From the sequence record KY555145.1: a stretch of DNA of 64,000 nucleotides, one strand, 5' to 3'. The position numbers and the translations under genes were made by a program. Within the stretch, counting starts at the first letter, position 1. Every line of letters starts with the position of its first letter. This document shows, one piece after another, positions 41,252 to 46,828 of this stretch. The notes below the pieces were generated by a model. That model was not told where the DNA came from, ran no database searches, and saw only the letters and a program-made list of their open reading frames with translations.

Positions 41252-42955
41252 TTACAGGCGCCAGTGGCGGCCGTTGAAGGTGATCAGCGCCCGCTTGCCA
41301 TTCGGGTACTGCACGCAGTGGGTATGCGCCCAGGACGAGGGGCCGGTGTTGTAGCCCATGTCCAGCTTCGAGGTCGTGCCGGTGTTGTAGGCGCTCTCGA
41401 AAATGCCGGGCGAGTGGGTGTGACCGAACGTCACCTTCGGGCCGATCTTGGCGAACTGCTGGATGTTGCCGCGCGAGCCGTTGGCGCCGTTGTGGCCGTG
41501 GTTGGAGTGCTCGACCCCGCCAACGACGCAGGTCTCGTCCTCGCGCAGGAACTTCACGCCGTTGCAGTTCCAGACGTCGAAGGCGTTAGTCATCACCTCC
41601 TCGAAGATCGAGAAGTTCTTCTCGCCGGTCCGGATCGAGGCGTAGACCGCCCGCTGGCAGGTCAGGAAGAACTCGGCGTTGACCGGGTCGGCGCGGTAGT
41701 CGGCCGTCTTCAGCCACTTGTTGAGCGCCAGATCGTGGTTGCTCTCGACCACCGTGACCTTCGAGTCCGGTGCCTGCCGGCCCAGAATGGTCAGGAACAT
41801 CGCCACCTCGCGCAGTTCCTGTTCGACGCTTTCAGAGCCCTTGACATAGAGCCGGAAGCGGTCGTGCGGATCGGCGATGTTGTGGTGGTTGCGTGCCCGG
41901 AAGTCGGACACGTCATGGACGAAGATGTGCTCGGGGCGCAGGACGTCGACCATCGACGGCGTCGCCACGCTGCCCCACACCCGGCTCCCGTCGGCCGAGC
42001 GTTGCTCGGTCGGGAAGAAACCGAAGGTGGCGGCCGAGACCTCCGGGTCGATCTGGGCGACGTGGATGTCCCCCGGCGTCAGGCAGGACACGCGATGGCC
42101 CTCGGTCACCACGCCGTCCTTGACGAACACGTCCAGATCGTAGAACGACCCGTCGGTGTCGCCCAGCAGGTGGCGGCAGAAGAACTTGCCGTCCTCGTCG
42201 ACCTCGACCAGCACCGCGCCCAGTTGGTGGTGGAAGCTGGCCTTGATCCCGGCCTTCTTCGGCACGTAGTTGGGCTTGGTGACCGCGCCCGTCGTCATGA
42301 TCTGCTTGGACGGGGTGTGCTTCATCGTCGGGACGCTGACGAGTTGCACCTTGGCGTGCGGGAAGATGCCCCAGCGCTCACGGGTGTAGGAGTGGAAGCC
42401 CGACAGCGGGTTCTCGGCCGTGGGGAGGGTGTTCATCTCGCCGCAGAAGTCGATCCGGTCGGCGATCCGCACGCGCTCGGCGACGAGGTATTCCATCACC
42501 CGCTTGTGGAAGAACGCCGCGTGCTTGGCGTGGTCCTCGAACAGGCGCTTGGAGTAGGTGAAGCCGGCGATCATGATCTCGCACGGCGCGTCCCGGCGCA
42601 GGTGCTCGGCATAGGCTTCCAGGTTGTCGACGAACCCCTCGTGGATGTGCGTCGAGTCCTGGGCCGAGGACAGGATGAACCGCCGGCGCCCGGTGGTCTC
42701 GTCCACCGTCACAGTCCGCGCGGCCGGGGCCGGGCGGTGCGACAGCGGGTCTTTGCGCATCGAGTAGAGCCGGTTTTGCAGGGTCGTGCGCTTGACGCTG
42801 TACTTGCGCGAGAACGCCCGTTGACCGCCGGCCTTCTTGACCATCGCGTTCAGTTCTTCCGGGGTCACCGAGTAGATGTCGAAGGGACCCTCGGCCGGCA
42901 AGGCGTCCTTGGGCTTCTTGCCCGCCTTGGAAGCGTGTTCGAACTCAGCCGGCAT
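41252..42955 (-). CDS. T5 A1-like protein / metallophosphoesterase-fold nuclease
   Basis: Start MPAEF at 42955; RFILSSAQ, TTGAVT..NY...KAG..A.FHH.LGA, GDIH, HD, SNHD, GHTHS motifs. Family assignment is from recalled similarity. Confidence 0.7.
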   Translation of the reverse strand: MPAEFEHASKAGKKPKDALPAEGPFDIYSVTPEELNAMVKKAGGQRAFSRKYSVKRTTLQNRLYSMRKDPLSHRPAPAARTVTVDETTGRRRFILSSAQDSTHIHEGFVDNLEAYAEHLRRDAPCEIMIAGFTYSKRLFEDHAKHAAFFHKRVMEYLVAERVRIADRIDFCGEMNTLPTAENPLSGFHSYTRERWGIFPHAKVQLVSVPTMKHTPSKQIMTTGAVTKPNYVPKKAGIKASFHHQLGAVLVEVDEDGKFFCRHLLGDTDGSFYDLDVFVKDGVVTEGHRVSCLTPGDIHVAQIDPEVSAATFGFFPTEQRSADGSRVWGSVATPSMVDVLRPEHIFVHDVSDFRARNHHNIADPHDRFRLYVKGSESVEQELREVAMFLTILGRQAPDSKVTVVESNHDLALNKWLKTADYRADPVNAEFFLTCQRAVYASIRTGEKNFSIFEEVMTNAFDVWNCNGVKFLREDETCVVGGVEHSNHGHNGANGSRGNIQQFAKIGPKVTFGHTHSPGIFESAYNTGTTSKLDMGYNTGPSSWAHTHCVQYPNGKRALITFNGRHWRL

Positions 42956-43646
42956 AGAGCAACTCCGGTTTGGCGCTGACCGGCTTGGACCAATCCCAGA
43001 CGTACCAAGCATAGGCGAAGCGCGGGGCGCCCTTGGTGCCGGCGATCCAGCGAGGGCGGTGGCGAAGGGTGACCTTCGCGGTGAAGGCGGGGTGATCGAA
43101 CAGGTCCTTGCGCGAGCGCGCGGCGTCCCATTCGTGGCGGCAGAGGAAGGCGACGAGGCCCTGATCGGCCTCCATCAGCGACAGCGCGTGGCGCGCGGCG
43201 CGCTCGGCGTCCTTGCCGTAGGGCGGGTTGGTGATGATGGCGTCGGGACGCGGCGGCAGCGGCGTGGGCTTGCGCTCCTCGCCCTTCTCATCGACGATGG
43301 TTTCGGGCCGGGCCTTCAGCGCGCCCAGGCGGTCGAGGTCCGCCGGCGTCAGCTTGAAGAAGTCCTCCACCGCGTCCACCTCGAAACCCTCGTAGCGGTG
43401 GATGTCCGTGGAGAGGACCTCCTGCACGAAGGGCTTGAGCGGCGTGGCGATCGCGCCGTTGCCCGCGAAGGGCTCCCAGGCGAAGAACGGGGCGAAGTCG
43501 TCGCCCAGGGCCTCGATCAGGGCGTCGAAGGCCGGCCGAGGAGTCGGGTAAAAGTCCAGCGGGGTCCTGGCATATCCGGAGGCGCCCAGCATGGAGGGGT
43601 CTTTGCGACCAGCATCGGAGAGAGACATGGTCGTGAGGGATGTCAT
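42945..43646 (-). CDS. Small amino-methyltransferase (m6A/m4C type)
   Basis: DFYPTP, WEPFAGNGAI (motif I), IITNPPY (motif IV). Confidence 0.85.
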   Translation of the reverse strand: MTSLTTMSLSDAGRKDPSMLGASGYARTPLDFYPTPRPAFDALIEALGDDFAPFFAWEPFAGNGAIATPLKPFVQEVLSTDIHRYEGFEVDAVEDFFKLTPADLDRLGALKARPETIVDEKGEERKPTPLPPRPDAIITNPPYGKDAERAARHALSLMEADQGLVAFLCRHEWDAARSRKDLFDHPAFTAKVTLRHRPRWIAGTKGAPRFAYAWYVWDWSKPVSAKPELLYAG

Positions 43647-43660
43647 GGTTAACGAAGGGT

Positions 43661-43675
43661 GTCAAGATTCACGAC
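43661..43675 (-). promoter_or_regulatory. Phage promoter motif copy
   Basis: Exact GTCAAGATTCACGAC, back-to-back with the promoter of the large ncRNA. Confidence 0.65.
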
Positions 43676-43676
43676 A

Positions 43677-43705
43677 TTGACTGTCGTGAGCCACCACGCT
43701 AGACA
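43677..43705 (+). promoter_or_regulatory. Caulobacter sigma73-type promoter TTGACT-N15-GCTAGACA
   Basis: Matches TTGAC...GCTANAWC housekeeping consensus. Confidence 0.75.
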
Positions 43706-44368
43706 GGGGGCTACGGGCCGTCCTCCTGCGTTAGCCCCGCCGCCGCGCCTTCCAGGCGGCGAAGGTCGGGACGGAGCCGAAGGCGAGCCGGCCGAGGCAG
43801 CGGTTGGCGAGCAAAAGGAGAACCCGGCGAGCGGCGGAAGGCGAGTTCCTCGCCCTCGAACTCGGAAAGCACGTGGTGATGCCGGAACCACCGCGTTCGC
43901 GCGGACGTCTGGACGTTGCTAGGCGTAAGGCTGGCCTGCCGAGAAATGGAAACGGCCGGGGCGGGCGGGACTTGATCTCGTCCGCCTTTCCGCCTAAGCT
44001 TCCCTCATTGCAGGCGCAGCACCGCCCTTCGCTAACGGCCCCGAGGGGTACGCAAGGGCTAGAAGCCTTGCCTGGGACAGGACTGCCTCTGATCCAGGAA
44101 CGCCCTGGGCCGCGTAGCGCCCATGACGCGAACGCCGGCCGAGAATGGGCGACTAGGCGTGACGGCGGCCAGAGGCCGCAGCGACATTCCAAGCTCGATA
44201 GAGCGATCGGCGGGCCGGGGCGAAAGCCCTGTTTCGAGAGCCAGGGCAACCCGTCATAGGTCCTGGTCGGGCGACGAGGCAGCAAGTCCCGCGAACGGAG
44301 CCTCTGAGGTGGCGTCACCAAGATGCAGCAGACGCAAAAAGGCCCCGATCGCGAGATCGGGGCCTTTT
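43706..44368 (+). ncRNA. Unassigned ~630-nt large structured RNA candidate
   Basis: Own promoter and terminator, no credible ORF, many tetraloop hairpins, 10-bp long-range pairing 43874-43883 with 44311-44320. Confidence 0.7.
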
Positions 44369-44369
44369 C
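44336..44369. terminator. Bidirectional intrinsic terminator
   Basis: AAAAAGGCCCCGATC-GCGA-GATCGGGGCCTTTT. Confidence 0.9.
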
Positions 44370-44373
44370 ATGT

Positions 44374-44462
44374 TGGAGCTTCGGGAGGGACTCGAACCCT
44401 CATAGGTGTTCCCACCAGCAGAGATTTGCAATCCCGCGCCTAACCTCTCAGTCCACCGAAGC
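44374..44462 (-). tRNA. tRNA-Cys(GCA) with long variable arm
   Basis: Acceptor GCTTCGG/CCGAAGC, U73-CCA, anticodon loop TTGCAAA, T arm GAGGG-TTCGAGT-CCCTC, 18-nt variable region with GGTG-GGAA-CACC hairpin. Confidence 0.88.
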
Positions 44463-44645
44463 ACAAAAGGACCTCGACGCCCGAAGGCCCGAGGTCCGAT
44501 CCGTAACCAGGGGAGGGCCGTAGCTGTCCCCTGACCCTGAACGACAGGTGGCGGGCTTGGTCGTCATCCCGTCAGGCTCGCGGCGCCGCTCGCCTGAACC
44601 GCCGATATGCCACGAGGGCAGTGATCCGCAGGTCCCCACAAATAG

Positions 44646-44682
44646 CAAAAAGGCCACGATCCGCGAGGACCGTGGCCTTTTC
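44646..44682. terminator. Bidirectional intrinsic terminator (3' of GOLLD-like RNA)
   Basis: AAAAAGGCCACG...CGTGGCCTTTT. Confidence 0.85.
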
Positions 44683-44687
44683 GTTTT

Positions 44688-45560
44688 CCGACGGGCTGAG
44701 ACTACACCCATCAGCAATCCCGCTTCGAGGATTATTCCCCAGGTGCGACCCCAGGTATTCCCTCGACGTCCACCAGACCCCTTGCGGTAGTCCAGTCCGA
44801 GATCATCGCCGCCGTTCTTGCGCACCCCGAAGGGATTGCGGGTCTGGCGTTTGACCCATCATGGCGAACTACTCGACAGTTCCTTCCCCGCTGGGCTTGC
44901 GACCCACTCACCGGCGCTAACCGGCTGACGAAGCTCTTCCTATCGACACCTCGCGGGCTTGCGACCCTTGAGATGACTCCGTTACCCGAGGGCCGGAGCA
45001 TTTGGCGACTTACGTCCGCCACTGGACCAGTCTTTGCGTTTTTCATCGAAGCGGGGATTGAACCCGCGACCGACAGCTAGGACGGCTGTTGCACTACCAC
45101 TGTGCTATTCGCAAACCCACCAAGACGTGCTGGTCCAGTTGTTCCCAGAGCTTTTGACCCCAGAAATGCAACACGCCTCATATCTTTCGCCTTGCGGGCT
45201 ACTCGACTGCTCTTCAGGACCCCGTCTCCCCCGACCTTTCGGCCAGGATGCCCAGCACCCCTCGAACTGAAGCAAAGCTCTTCACCGCGAAGTGTCGAAC
45301 CCTGCAACCCAAACGGTTATCCGTACTCCCTAGACACGCTTGCACGGGATAGTCCGCTTGCGACGGACTGGCGGTTAAAGCCTCGGAGTTACCCCGGCCC
45401 CGCCTTGTCTCCCACGGTCTTCAGGTCTATCCCCTTTTGCAAGAGGCGGCCAGCTTCCCAGCCCGGACCCGTCGGCTTCCTCTGTCCTCTTGCGAGGTCG
45501 GGCGGCCTATGGGAGACCGTCCCTGTCACCCCGTCGCCGGGGCTTTCGTCAGAAGCGACG
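44688..45560 (-). ncRNA. GOLLD-like giant ornate RNA (~870 nt)
   Basis: On - strand: GAGTAGCCCGCAAGGCGAAAGATATGAGGCGTGTTGCATT...CAAAAG, a second GAGTAGTT, many GCAA/GAAA tetraloops and 3' GGGTGTAGTCTCAGCCC, all resembling recalled GOLLD consensus; flanked by promoter and terminator. Confidence 0.75.
45043..45114 (-). pseudogene. tRNA-like element embedded in GOLLD-like RNA
   Basis: Intact D arm (GCAC/GTGC), anticodon stem (ACAGC/GCTGT, loop CGTCCTA) and T arm (GCGGG-TTCAATC-CCCGC), but only a 4-bp acceptor stem and no CCA. Confidence 0.75.
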
Positions 45561-45565
45561 ATGAC

Positions 45566-45594
45566 GTTCTAGCGACAGCCCACGTCGTCGTCAA
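45566..45594 (-). promoter_or_regulatory. Sigma73-type promoter TTGACG-N15-GCTAGAAC for GOLLD-like RNA
   Basis: Near-perfect Caulobacter housekeeping consensus on - strand. Confidence 0.8.
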
Positions 45595-45650
45595 CGACTT
45601 TTTACATCCCGGCGCGGAATTTTTTCGACAGTCGTGGATGACGACAGTGC

Positions 45651-45679
45651 TTGACATTCTCGTAGACCCATGCTAGGTG
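45651..45679 (+). promoter_or_regulatory. Promoter TTGACA-N15-GCTAGGTG for tmRNA
   Basis: Divergent from the GOLLD promoter. Confidence 0.7.
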
Positions 45680-45681
45680 TC

Positions 45682-46058
45682 GAAAATCGTTGTAATTCGG
45701 ACAACGGAACTGGCGGCAAGACAGGGGTGCGAATCCCCTCGCCTCCACCATCGACGCCCGGCGCTGGGAGTACGCGACTCCTGGGCAGGGAGTGTTACCC
45801 TGGCGGGCTGCGGCCCGAGCCAAAGGTAGCCGGGCGTCGTTGATGGGGGCGACTAGCTTTCGATTGGCGCTCGGGACTGAAAGACGCAACGGTGGGTGAC
45901 CTCCACATCGGCTTGCCGGTGATCGGGTCAGGCAACAGTAAATGTCGCCGACAATGACAACGACGTCGTGGCTTTCGCCTCGGCTCGTGAAGCCATCGCC
46001 GCCTAATAAGCGGTAGAGGAGCCCGCCGGGAGCTTGGCAACAGAATCCCGGCAACCCC
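45682..46058 (+). ncRNA. ssrA: Circularly permuted two-piece tmRNA
   Basis: Acceptor piece ends AGGGG-TGCGAAT-CCCCT-CGCCTCC-A-CCA (45750); coding piece starts GGGGGCG (45845), giving a G3.U70 pair; resume context AACAGTAAATGTC-GCC; tag frame 45947-46006 encodes ADNDNDVVAFASAREAIAA-stop-stop; 3' GGCAACAGAA motif. Confidence 0.92.
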
Positions 46059-46187
46059 CTTTCGCAGGCGGGAACACCAACAGGCGATCTGTCGGGCGAC
46101 CGATTTCCGATCCGTGTTCCCGTCTTCGAAAGGTGGTCAGGCCTACCCTCTTGGTGTGCTATCCAAGGGTCTGGCCACTTTACAGAA

Positions 46188-46266
46188 CGCGGGGTAGAGG
46201 AGTCCGGTTGTCCTCGTCTGGCTCATAACCAGGAGATCGTGGGTTCAAATCCCACTCCCGCTCCCA
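46188..46266 (+). tRNA. tRNA-Met(CAT), initiator-like
   Basis: CGCGGGG acceptor with C1xU72 mismatch, loop CTCATAA, T arm GTGGG-TTCAAAT-CCCAC, CCA end. Confidence 0.88.
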
Positions 46267-46270
46267 ATGC

Positions 46271-46549
46271 GAACGCCGGCTGTTGAGAACGACGGCGTGA
46301 CAAGCTCGGAGAGAACGAGCACTCCAGTCCGGGGTATGAGGCCGGACTAGCGGACGCCGTAGCGATTGCAGGCGTGACACCCGGAGATAGCGGGACCGAT
46401 TTTCCAGGCTCCATGCCCGGCGCGTCGGGGGCGGACCGTTAATCCGCCCGGCGTCAGAGGATGAGGCTAGTTCTCGGCGATGAAGCTGCGCGCGCAGTGA
46501 GAAAGCCAGGGCATGGCGCTTGGAAAGTCGGTTCGCGGTTCGTCCGCTA
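46271..46549 (+). ncRNA. Structured spacer RNA: two tandem motif copies plus long rod-like stem
   Basis: GRACGCC...GGCGTGACA-hairpin twice; 23/24-bp stem 46395-46418 with 46509-46532; 9-bp stem 46348-46356 with 46541-46549. Confidence 0.55.
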
Positions 46550-46554
46550 CGAGA

Positions 46555-46628
46555 TGGAGATGTCGCCGGTTCGAGTCCGGCAGGTCCCCCAAAAGGAGGC
46601 CTTAGCTCAGTCGGTAGAGCGCTCCTAT
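46555..46628 (+). pseudogene. tRNA 3' half followed by tRNA 5' half (permuted order)
   Basis: 46555-46591 = anticodon-stem strand, variable loop, T arm GCCGG-TTCGAGT-CCGGC, acceptor AGGTCCC; 46596-46628 = GAGGCCT-TA-GCTC-AGTCGGTA-GAGC-G-CTCC. Confidence 0.6.
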
Positions 46629-46637
46629 CCCACCTTT

Positions 46638-46722
46638 GGTACGGTGGCTCGACAGGTAAGGCATCGGCCTCATAAGCCGAGGGTTCGTCCCAATCCTGGT
46701 TCAAATCCAGGTCGTACCTCCA
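46638..46722 (+). tRNA. tRNA(CAT), Met or Ile2, with long variable arm
   Basis: Acceptor GGTACGG/TCGTACC, U73-CCA, TCGGC-CTCATAA-GCCGA, 14-nt variable region GGG-TTCGT-CCC-AAT, T arm CCTGG-TTCAAAT-CCAGG. Confidence 0.88.
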
Positions 46723-46795
46723 ATCGACGCTTGACCCCAGGCCGCAGGCTGCTAAGCTTCCCCGGTCGGGATCGTCCCGCGTCCTTTCCAAGGTC

Positions 46796-46828
46796 AAGCC
46801 CCCGGAGCCTCGCTTCGGGGGCTTTTCA
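46796..46828. terminator. Intrinsic terminator closing the RNA island
   Basis: AAGCCCCCGGAG...CTTCGGGGGCTTTT. Confidence 0.85.

Follow-up and report, generated by a model that had tools for sequence, protein, structure and literature searches.

The RNAs of the GOLLD family assemble into a homo-oligomeric nanocage (a 14-mer), and we know of no function that has been found for them since 2009; the transfer RNA (tRNA) cluster of phage T4 gives rise to the species 1 and species 2 RNAs, which are stable RNAs other than tRNAs, are presumably cut from tRNA precursors and have no known function; and the escape of phage tRNAs from anticodon nucleases is an established concept. Here, we present the analysis of a 3.2-kb RNA island that contains a GOLLD RNA next to further RNAs of known and new kinds; it is located at positions 43677 to 46828 of a 64,000-nucleotide (nt) stretch of sequence record KY555145.1, to which we refer as “the window”. 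The source phages are phiCbK-like (Shapirovirus, subfamily Dolichocephalovirinae). For these phages, the 2012 phiCbK genome paper reports no RNA besides tRNAs from Rfam (PMC3556154), and the literature on GOLLD and Caulobacter, and on phiCbK and transfer-messenger RNA (tmRNA), has yielded no description of the island.

Between positions 43600 and 46900, the window shares 100% identity with the Caulobacter phages Ccr10, Ccr2 and Ccr29 and 97.8% with phiCbK, with 26 Caulobacter phage records matching; in the phage genome, the island is located in the replication-gene region, with a methylase on one side and a helicase on the other. At curated thresholds, Rfam identifies six RNA genes in the 64-kilobase (kb) window, all six of them inside the island: GOLLD, a permuted tmRNA and four tRNAs; the ARAGORN calls agree, and the tmRNA is again called permuted. 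The island also contains a structured RNA of ~650 nt, three copies of a pseudoknot motif and a permuted tRNA-like element. The original prediction had listed a GOLLD-like RNA, a two-piece tmRNA, an unknown RNA and three tRNAs; the first three are retained here, whereas the tRNA-shaped genes now number four, with one located in GOLLD, and the permuted element is added to them. GOLLD, the two-piece tmRNA and the phage tRNA island are thus of known kinds; new are the 650-nt RNA, the pseudoknot motif, the permuted cloverleaf and the class-II-shaped tRNAs for cysteine and methionine. With moderate confidence, we propose that the island would consist of stable-RNA operons in a conserved cluster; the host RNA polymerase would transcribe them from four sigma-73-type promoters and host tRNA-processing enzymes would mature the products, with the pseudoknot motif serving as a boundary element.

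The claim that no credible protein-coding sequence (CDS) exists between positions 43646 and 46826 has held. The genome has a G+C content of 65%, and the real genes on either side reach a G+C fraction of 0.9-0.97 in one codon phase, whereas no coding signal is found from ~43650 to 46800, the fraction being flat at 0.5-0.79 in every codon phase. The sole CDS that GenBank annotates in the island is Ccr10_gp126c (43731..44321, minus strand, 196 amino acids (aa)), with equivalents in Karma (gp130) and phiCbK (gp128). These three annotations, and the open reading frame (ORF) of 196 aa itself, speak for the alternative that the left part of the island codes for a protein and that the region is not all RNA; on the other side stand the missing third-position G+C periodicity, in a genome where real genes reach at least 0.9, and the way in which the frame has changed between relatives. 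Substitutions are spread evenly over the codon positions (7:3:6 against phiCbK, 12:10:7 against Karma, 76:76:89 against CcrBL10), insertions and deletions of 1-2 nt occur even against the closest relatives (1 nt against phiCbK and Karma), and annotators disagree over the region, with 53 aa in S2L, no CDS in CcrBL10, a different ORF in Rogue and a “DNA transfer protein” in RBC8. Because of the even substitutions, the 1-nt insertions and deletions between close relatives and the discordant annotation, gp126c is almost certainly spurious as judged from these alignments, which leaves the coding alternative with next to no probability. The “DNA transfer protein” ORFs of RBC8 (RBC8_126c, locus L007 2854-3267) and of BL64 (its equivalent) lie inside non-coding RNA that is homologous to 43710-44370, and this label is therefore probably an error.

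The proposed operon structure is drawn from the promoters and terminators of the island. The Caulobacter-type sigma-73 promoter pattern, TTGAC-N13-17-GCTA, has seven matches in 64 kb against 0.63 expected, and four of the seven are located in the island (43677+, 45594-, 45651+ and 46731+); with three terminators that consist of a hairpin and a T-run, they bear out the earlier count of at least four sigma-73-type promoters and three terminators. Promoter P1 (43670..43708, plus strand) has TTGACT at 43677-43682 and GCTAGACA at 43698-43705, and its -35 box is enclosed in the perfect palindrome CACGACA-TTGAC-TGTCGTG (43670-43688), which is unique in the 64 kb against 0.02 expected; 43 nt around P1 are identical in three clades, though the RNA downstream is only ~67% identical. 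Since the window has it only once and three clades keep it unchanged, the palindrome is likely an operator for some regulator, as far as sequence comparison can tell. Words related to the palindrome (GACAGTCGTG and GACGACAGTG) occur just upstream of the tmRNA promoter, at 45628-45650. The GOLLD promoter (45570..45594, minus strand; TTGACG...GCTAGAAC) and the promoter of the tmRNA/tRNA-Met unit (45651..45682, plus strand; TTGACA-N15-GCTAGGTG) are of the same sigma-73 type, and the fourth promoter (TTGACC...GCTAAGCT) opens a stretch at 46731..46826 (plus strand; fold z = -3.8) that comprises a possible RNA of ~65 nt and a terminator.

The terminators are located at 44340..44370, where a bidirectional intrinsic terminator, kept in all clades, closes both the ~650-nt RNA (plus strand) and the tRNA-Cys unit (minus strand); at 44646..44683 (minus strand), where a 17-base-pair (bp) stem followed by a T-run ends GOLLD; and at 46796-46826 (plus strand), where a strong hairpin with a T-run is shared with the convergent gene gp127c. 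Only ~65 nt separate the fourth promoter from this last terminator, and the segment 46762-46826 may encode a small RNA or act as an anti-read-through device, to go by its layout.

From these signals, three transcription units are predicted. Unit 1 (plus strand, ~43710-44370) would yield the structured ~650-nt RNA with one pseudoknot motif. Unit 2 (minus strand, ~45562-44646) would yield a GOLLD RNA of ~915 nt with a tRNA-like domain in its linker, and probably also tRNA-Cys (44462-44374) by read-through of a conserved stretch of ~180 nt upstream of that gene; this stretch (44463..44645, minus strand) has a hairpin and a U-run at 44469-44490 and is kept in Poindextervirus and Bajun, it contains no match to the promoter pattern and its single-sequence fold is no better than shuffles, and it is probably a leader that is reached from GOLLD. 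Unit 3 (plus strand, ~45685-46826) would be a precursor of ~1.1 kb that carries the tmRNA, tRNA-Met 1, two pseudoknot motifs, a helix-closed domain, the permuted cloverleaf and tRNA-Met 2. Host tRNA-processing enzymes (RNase P, RNase Z/E) would cut at the tRNA-shaped parts, and these cuts would free the non-tRNA RNAs as separate stable molecules.

The RNA of unit 1, which we call island RNA 1, is an undescribed structured RNA at 43710..44370 (plus strand) that ends at the bidirectional terminator, with gp126c on the opposite strand. An unknown RNA of 630 nt had been predicted here; a non-coding, conserved structure does exist, and its size is corrected to ~650 nt (~43710 to 44370). Full-length homologues that are ~67% identical occur in Poindextervirus and BL57. 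When a five-sequence alignment is compared with column shuffles by RNAalifold, the plus strand gives z -7.2 and 30 fully compensatory pairs (shuffle mean 18, maximum 26), and the minus strand of the region gives z -4.7 and 25 such pairs (shuffle mean 17, maximum 28); the G-U pairs in an embedded hairpin likewise favour the plus strand. The body of the RNA consists of conserved single-stranded blocks (GAGGCAGC, GCCGAGAA, AGGCGCAGCAC and GGACUGCC) interleaved with stems that change in a compensatory manner, and no Rfam 15 family matches it at E<5. By this covariation, island RNA 1 is an RNA with conserved structure, and we see it, together with GOLLD, as a putative phage structural RNA; a conserved structured RNA of ~650 nt is at present mis-annotated as a protein gene.

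The original prediction had also noted structured spacers in the island; they are structured, and it had overlooked that they contain a discrete pseudoknot motif that occurs in phages widely. Searched with model R1, the window contains three copies, all on the plus strand: copy 1 at 44120..44182 (48.6 bits, E 3.5e-9), copy 2 at 46261..46322 (40.4 bits, E 2e-7), which begins 1-2 nt past the CCA of tRNA-Met 1, and copy 3 at 46342..46397 (31.7 bits, E 1.5e-5). The model search of the 64-kb window was exhaustive, and all three copies are in the island; another 50 kb of this phage, which include its cluster of 22 tRNAs and bring the total to 114 kb, contain none.

The motif is ~55 nt long and combines an H-type pseudoknot with a GAGAGA hairpin. 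A short helix, P0, closes an 8-nt loop, GAACGCCG, from which ACGCC pairs with a downstream GGCGU; GAC(A/G) follows, and then hairpin P2, of 4-6 bp, with a GAGAGA loop that reads CC-AGA-GG in the phiCbK group. The 55-nt core of copy 1 (44120-44182) is 80-93% identical to the several copies that are present in each of Colossus, CcrPW and the Brevundimonas phages, and ~20 positions of the motif are nearly invariant across phages of very different hosts. The helices covary: the inner pair of P0 is GC in 29 sequences, CG in 27 and UA in 10, and P0 and P2 together are 84.7% paired in the 74 training sequences, against 71.1% in shuffles, with a covariation score of 0.313 against 0.099. For 86 distinct viral sequences that R1 retrieved as an independent set, the corresponding values are 86.5% against 59.8% and 0.598 against 0.133; none of 500 shuffles reaches the observed values in either set, and the covariation signal is lost in both when the 3' partners are slid by 1-3 columns. 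The invariance of ACGCC/GGCGU is partly forced by the search pattern, which required the pseudoknot helix; among copies that were found by the model only, this helix shows the compensatory variant ACGUC/GACGU (L005:4364, and L133:680 with its duplicates) and one G.U variant.

Rfam 15 contains no family that matches the motif, be it in the window (E<=5) or at 30 motif-bearing loci (E<=1); Mu-gpT-DE and the known small ribozymes are among those that fail to match. Resemblances to the hammerhead (CUGA...GAA), K-turn, pistol, HDV-like, guanidine-III and fluoride RNAs were considered and set aside, as these RNAs do not fit the conserved positions and give no model match; a reading as an upstream start-stop codon element (AUGUAG or AUGA before the motif) was likewise set aside, position and frame not being conserved. 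More than 10,000 unnamed RNA candidates from IMG/VR have been published in a study whose text names no capsid-downstream motif (PMC10690425), and the present motif could be among them.

In Colossus, CcrPW and Kabachok (L008 3523-4065; L009 2648-3190 and 3996-4060; L011 3731-4290), the 650-nt RNA is replaced by three to four tandem units of 225-255 nt, each of which starts with one pseudoknot motif, and many of which have a TTGAC box 1-12 nt after hairpin P2; judging from this arrangement, they may be an array of separately transcribed small RNAs. The arrays of cDNA-templating non-coding RNAs of the UG27 type (doi 10.64898/2026.09.22.753630) were weighed as an explanation of the tandem units and rejected, given that no reverse transcriptase gene is nearby and that the unit size differs.

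The distribution of the motif was explored by pattern scans of up to 120 DNA stretches per collection, followed by a filter for P0 and P2 pairing; the counts that follow are among the matches listed. The filter is passed by 100 of 114 pattern matches (113 loci) in IMG/VR viral contigs, by 55 of 121 (120 loci) in metagenome contigs and by 17 of 123 (120 loci) in bacterial and archaeal genomes. Raw pattern counts have not been used, because the degenerate pattern gives many chance matches in GC-rich bacterial genomes, where 106 of 123 fail the structure filter. Since the filter is passed by 100 of 114 IMG/VR matches against 17 of 123 bacterial ones, we regard the motif as essentially viral; in all, over 200 contigs from viruses and metagenomes contain it.

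Elsewhere, ~85% of copies are located away from tRNAs. A same-strand ORF ends shortly upstream of the motif in 93 of 155 cases, with a median distance from stop codon to P0 of 18 nt (quartiles 16 and 42). Major capsid proteins of five Pfam families account for 30 of 79 upstream ORFs (Phage_cap_E 10, SU10_MCP 9, Mu-like_gpT 5, Phage_capsid_4 5, Phage_capsid 1), and others encode single-stranded DNA-binding proteins (SSBs; gp32, Enc34, DUF669), RecT, RNA ligase or DUF2303. Near tRNAs, the motif typically ends 4-13 nt 5' of the tRNA (L129, L132, L134, L263, L274, L276 and L330); in Colossus, CcrPW and L018, a contig from IMG/VR, the distance from its end to tRNA-Cys or tRNA-Met 2 is 2-10 nt, and among its neighbours are also a phage tmRNA in L132 and an RNase P RNA, likewise of a phage, in L129. 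This capsid-downstream context led us to weigh identity with Mu-gpT-DE (RF03012), which was rejected, there being no match at E<=1 at any motif position, those at loci downstream of capsid genes included.

Further observations concern individual loci. Metagenome phage-like tRNA arrays with the motif (L129 2663-3035 and L132 1362-1726) also encode, between their tRNAs, a complete RNase P RNA of bacterial class A (253 bits) and a tmRNA in one piece (78.5 bits). In L018 (2870-2990), a motif copy is followed by the tRNA-like sequence GGGUGGAUAGCUCA ... GUGGGUUCGAUCCCCAC ... CCUCCA, which ARAGORN does not call and which may, by its sequence, be a tRNA with a large insert. Six viral contigs (L264, L265, L271, L278, L299 and L300) have two same-strand motif copies 75-320 nt apart, of which the second is usually the more divergent.

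Because the copies elsewhere mostly follow capsid and SSB genes and do not stand in tRNA contexts, the motif points to RNA processing or stability rather than to tRNA mimicry; and because it occupies boundaries beside very highly expressed RNAs, we read it as a punctuation element for processing or stability. Our best guess is that the motif would be a cis-acting boundary element, which would stay folded just outside the footprint of the terminating ribosome, or just 5' of a tRNA, and would there define or protect the ends of highly expressed RNAs. Two points weigh against such a role: copy 1 is located in the middle of the 650-nt RNA and not at its end, and the ~20 near-invariant positions exceed the needs of an exonuclease block, a degree of conservation that suggests a specific partner or catalysis. 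The same ~20 positions, shared by diverse phages, favour the rival explanation that the motif cuts or marks polycistronic phage RNAs instead of stabilising them passively, either as a small ribozyme that cleaves itself or by offering a dedicated binding site or substrate to some conserved host factor, such as RNase P, the ribosome or RNA polymerase; its position at intergenic boundaries, sometimes in tandem pairs ~100 nt apart, would suit this as well, and its compactness, with a pseudoknot and a hairpin, is presumably like that of small ribozymes such as pistol, in architecture only. No known ribozyme family matches at E<=1-5, however, the ACGCC/GGCGU invariance stems in part from the search pattern, and no cleavage site can be deduced from the sequence, so that we regard this explanation as rather doubtful and keep the boundary element as our preferred reading of the motif.

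A broader proposal, which we put forward tentatively, is that the motif would represent a class of phage RNA that is new and widespread, has a specific biochemical activity (self-cleaving, or a handle for RNase P or another host factor) and punctuates highly expressed transcripts after capsid and SSB genes and between tRNAs, and that the 650-nt RNA would join GOLLD and ROOL as a third kind of large structural RNA in phages. If this were true, both the activity of the motif and the 650-nt RNA would be genetically testable in phiCbK and Caulobacter crescentus. Uncultivated phages commonly carry the motif, Rfam 15 lacks it and its place is 3' of the most highly expressed phage genes, which makes it a candidate for a general processing or stability signal.

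The GOLLD RNA of unit 2 was described in the original prediction as GOLLD-like, and by its covariance-model score it belongs to RF02032. Its conserved 3' domain (44693..45179, minus strand) scores 165.3 bits against a gathering score of 150 (E 1.4e-44), the Rfam model is matched from end to end (1-416 of 416), and the context is that of a phage with adjoining tRNA genes; among relatives, the scores are 171 bits in Karma, 170 bits in BL57 and 104 bits in Bajun. The putative 5' variable domain (45180..45562, minus strand) is assigned from the position of the promoter directly upstream; it is non-coding and, in Shapirovirus and BL57 only, 88-100% conserved. From the promoter (45594-45570) to the terminator (44683-44646), the predicted transcript is ~915 nt long, where >800 nt is the criterion of the family. 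None of the GenBank records inspected annotates GOLLD. With its own promoter and terminator, in phiCbK-type phages of Caulobacter crescentus, a genetic model pair that ranks among the best, GOLLD lends itself to straightforward deletion and structure-function tests.

The linker of GOLLD contains a tRNA-like insert (45042..45115, minus strand) with anticodon UCC and an anticodon loop that has G33. Because the Rfam tRNA model matches only its positions 4-67 of 71, the insert lacks the outer acceptor pairs and the CCA, and the full cloverleaf with a 7-bp acceptor stem that marks a canonical tRNA is not found in this embedded copy. Its anticodon loop (45069-45080; L002 2940-3024; L004 3143-3229) varies between phages that are otherwise 97% identical, the remainder of the tRNA being unchanged: the loop is CGUCCUA in Ccr10 and phiCbK (UCC, G33), CAUCCUA in BL57 (UCC, A33) and, at the same place in Karma, CUCUUAA, a canonical Lys-CUU loop; the canonical CUU loop also occurs in Swift and Magneto.

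The tmRNA gene (45685..46097, plus strand) is in two pieces and circularly permuted, as had been claimed. Rfam RF04321 matches at 45688-46006 (plus strand) with 71.9 bits against a gathering score of 47, and ARAGORN calls a permuted tmRNA at 45658-46097. The acceptor piece, which ends in ...CUCCACCA, has ...CCUCCACCA at 45742-45750, upstream of the coding GGGGGCGA at 45845; the alanine identity pair G3:U70 can be read from the sequence, where 5'-GGGGGCG pairs with CGCCUCC-A-CCA. The tag of the coding piece, (A)DNDNDVVAFASAREAIAA, ends in ...AREAIAA and is followed by two stops; the tag of the host tmRNA is AANDNFAEEFAVAA. Homologues are present in every relative examined, and among the GenBank records inspected, only that of the Brevundimonas phage Bajun annotates the tmRNA.

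Three further tRNA genes have a complete cloverleaf with a 7-bp acceptor stem. tRNA-Cys (GCA, 89 nt, 44374..44462, minus strand, 33.8 bits) and tRNA-Met 2 (CAU, 85 nt, 46638..46722, plus strand, 47.4 bits) share a long variable arm, i.e. a class-II shape, a Ser-like D-arm, U73 and an encoded CCA, and they are 66% identical to each other; the short variable loop of class I is not found in either, a paired variable arm of 13-17 nt being present in eight phages. In the alignments of these eight phages, compensatory changes occur in 11 of 23 pairs of tRNA-Cys and in 10 of 22 pairs of tRNA-Met 2. tRNA-Met 1 (CAU, 79 nt, 46188..46266, plus strand) has an 11-nt D-loop, a C1 x U72 mismatch and C as discriminator; the 1:72 mismatch is present in most phages, and the three G-C pairs of initiator anticodon stems are absent. 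With the long variable arms, the GOLLD insert without outer acceptor pairs and the permuted cloverleaf, the earlier remark that nearly every tRNA-shaped element deviates from the canonical form is well founded.

The main tRNA cluster of the phage, located outside the window (L374 42594-42776; Ccr10 genome 49,593-49,775), contains two long tRNAs whose anticodons are those of Lys, CUU in one (87 nt) and UUU in the other (91 nt), and both end in U73-CCA; Lys-CUU forms a cloverleaf whose long variable arm is paired, and the fold of Lys-UUU is not a clean cloverleaf. Because the class-II shape is also found on tRNA-Lys CUU of this ordinary cluster, we consider its presence on tRNAs other than those for Leu, Ser and Tyr a trait of the lineage, and the class-II-shaped Cys, Met and Lys tRNAs raise testable questions of aminoacylation identity. 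In the same cluster, a sub-threshold tRNA-Sec-like match (L374 43395-43477; 44 bits against 47) follows two tRNA-Ser genes, and ARAGORN finds tRNAs at 42409-42481, 43136-43206 and 44685-44759 (Thr-GGU, Ala-UGC and Ile-AAU) that have no GenBank annotation.

Just upstream of tRNA-Met 2, the segment 46549..46633 (plus strand) folds at minimum free energy (MFE) into a permuted tRNA-like cloverleaf, which is composed of an outer stem on the anticodon side, a T-arm (GCCGG-UUCGAGU-CCGGC), an acceptor-like stem that is closed by a loop, and a canonical D-arm. The element of Kabachok has the same permuted topology in its MFE fold; homologues precede tRNA-Met 2 in Colossus, CcrPW and L018, and are absent from BL57 and Poindextervirus. 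The cloverleaf is read from single-sequence folds and manual parsing, the cross-genus alignment by MAFFT and RNAalifold being poor. The YrlA / Y RNA model (RF02553) gives 29.7 bits against a threshold of 69 and covers model positions 23-85 of 114, i.e. the tRNA-like part only; a Ro-binding helix is not recognised in the bulged outer stem, to which no Ro-site model was applied, and no rsr (Ro) gene is seen in the neighbourhood, where no search aimed at one was made. In its modelled fold, the cloverleaf thus resembles a YrlA-type tRNA mimic and yet falls outside RF02553. Between the third pseudoknot copy and the cloverleaf, a structured domain (46398..46527, plus strand) is closed by a helix of ~18 bp, UUUUCCAGGC.CCAUGCCC / GGGCAUGG.GCUUGGAAAG; its fold has z = -2.96, with 0 of 200 shuffles as good, its closing helix shows compensatory changes in Karma, BL57, CcrBL10 and Rogue, and it has no Rfam 15 match at permissive thresholds.

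The deviating tRNAs invite another explanation, that of the original prediction, in which the class-II Cys and Met tRNAs, the tRNA embedded in GOLLD and the cloverleaf, as decoys or replacements, resist or absorb anticodon nucleases and other tRNA-targeting defences, and the tmRNA would clear the stalled ribosomes that result. All tRNA-shaped elements of the island are non-canonical, and the embedded anticodon loop varies between 97%-identical phages, a pattern that anticodon-loop nucleases would be expected to select for. The island has been linked to no nuclease target, defence gene or repair enzyme, however, the pseudoknot copies elsewhere are mostly outside tRNA contexts, and the class-II shape, present also on tRNA-Lys of the ordinary cluster, looks lineage-wide and not like an adaptation of the island; we therefore hold this explanation to be unlikely. 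For the stable-RNA operons that we propose instead, the tmRNA and the tRNAs would keep translation going during infection, in line with the known roles of these families; the earlier idea of translation support fits these two components, on the basis of the nature of their families.

A synteny survey across phiCbK-like phages, suggested at the outset as a check, shows that the order of the island and its flanking genes are conserved across Dolichocephalovirinae. Between the A1-like and methylase genes and the helicase, the order is: unknown RNA or tandem motif units, tRNA-Cys, GOLLD where present, tmRNA, tRNA-Met, spacer, tRNA-Met; it is kept in Shapirovirus, Poindextervirus, Colossusvirus, the Brevundimonas phages Bajun and Kabachok, and an IMG/VR contig. 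Such conservation of the order speaks for the maintenance of the module. Shapirovirus, BL57 and Bajun are alone in carrying GOLLD, which is absent from Poindextervirus and Colossusvirus, and the strand of tRNA-Cys varies between relatives; since GOLLD and the permuted element are missing from some relatives, the parts of the island are separable. Of the coordinated module that had been postulated, the maintenance is thus supported by synteny; neither the notion of one coordinated system, of which GOLLD and the cloverleaf come and go, nor that of parts that soak up tRNA-targeting defence nucleases finds support here. The patchy GOLLD and cloverleaf and the flipping strand of tRNA-Cys also tell against our own proposal, inasmuch as a tight functional coupling of all parts is doubtful on this comparative evidence.

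The genus-dependent content (GOLLD, the tandem 225-255-nt units, the tRNA-Cys strand and the patchy cloverleaf) is what could be expected if the island were an accretion zone, where unrelated mobile or selfish RNA genes have piled into a permissive gap between replication genes and share no function. Such a zone would hardly keep its core order and its flanking genes across a subfamily, or promoter P1 with its operator invariant, and compensatory change keeps the stems, which argues that each part is under purifying selection; this explanation is in our judgement very unlikely, and we continue to favour a conserved cluster of stable-RNA operons. The database records could be amended already: gp126c and its equivalents should be dropped, and GOLLD, the tmRNA and the other RNA features entered.

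Lastly, we compare the elements of the island with the described systems that are closest to them. The fold proposed for the cloverleaf is like YrlA in that its tRNA-like domain opens on the anticodon side, its acceptor-like stem is closed by a loop and its T-arm and D-arm are canonical; it differs in its location, 5 nt upstream of a tRNA and inside a precursor. The pseudoknot motif shares with Mu-gpT-DE (RF03012) the position just downstream of major capsid genes, including that of Mu-like gpT (five cases), but it is also found after SSB and RecT genes and inside tRNA arrays. The tmRNA agrees with the two-piece tmRNA of Alphaproteobacteria (RF04321 / RF01849) in its permuted order, its G3:U70 pair and a tag that starts with A-(D/A)-N-D-N and ends with AA and stops; in contrast to these, it is borne by a phage, its tag is longer (19 aa) and ends in AIAA, and it is predicted to be co-transcribed with tRNAs and other RNAs. 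The GOLLD RNA agrees with RF02032 in its full-model match, its tRNA neighbours in a phage and a putative variable 5' half, and, like some GOLLDs that have been described (Kretsch et al., doi 10.1101/2024.12.08.627333), it holds a tRNA within its linker; it differs in being carried by a virulent siphophage of Alphaproteobacteria and in having its own sigma-73-type promoter, and its embedded tRNA is without outer acceptor pairs and has an anticodon loop that varies among near-identical phages. Compared, by description, with the species 1 and 2 RNAs of T4, the elements that accompany the tRNAs of this island are a defined pseudoknot class and a 650-nt RNA.

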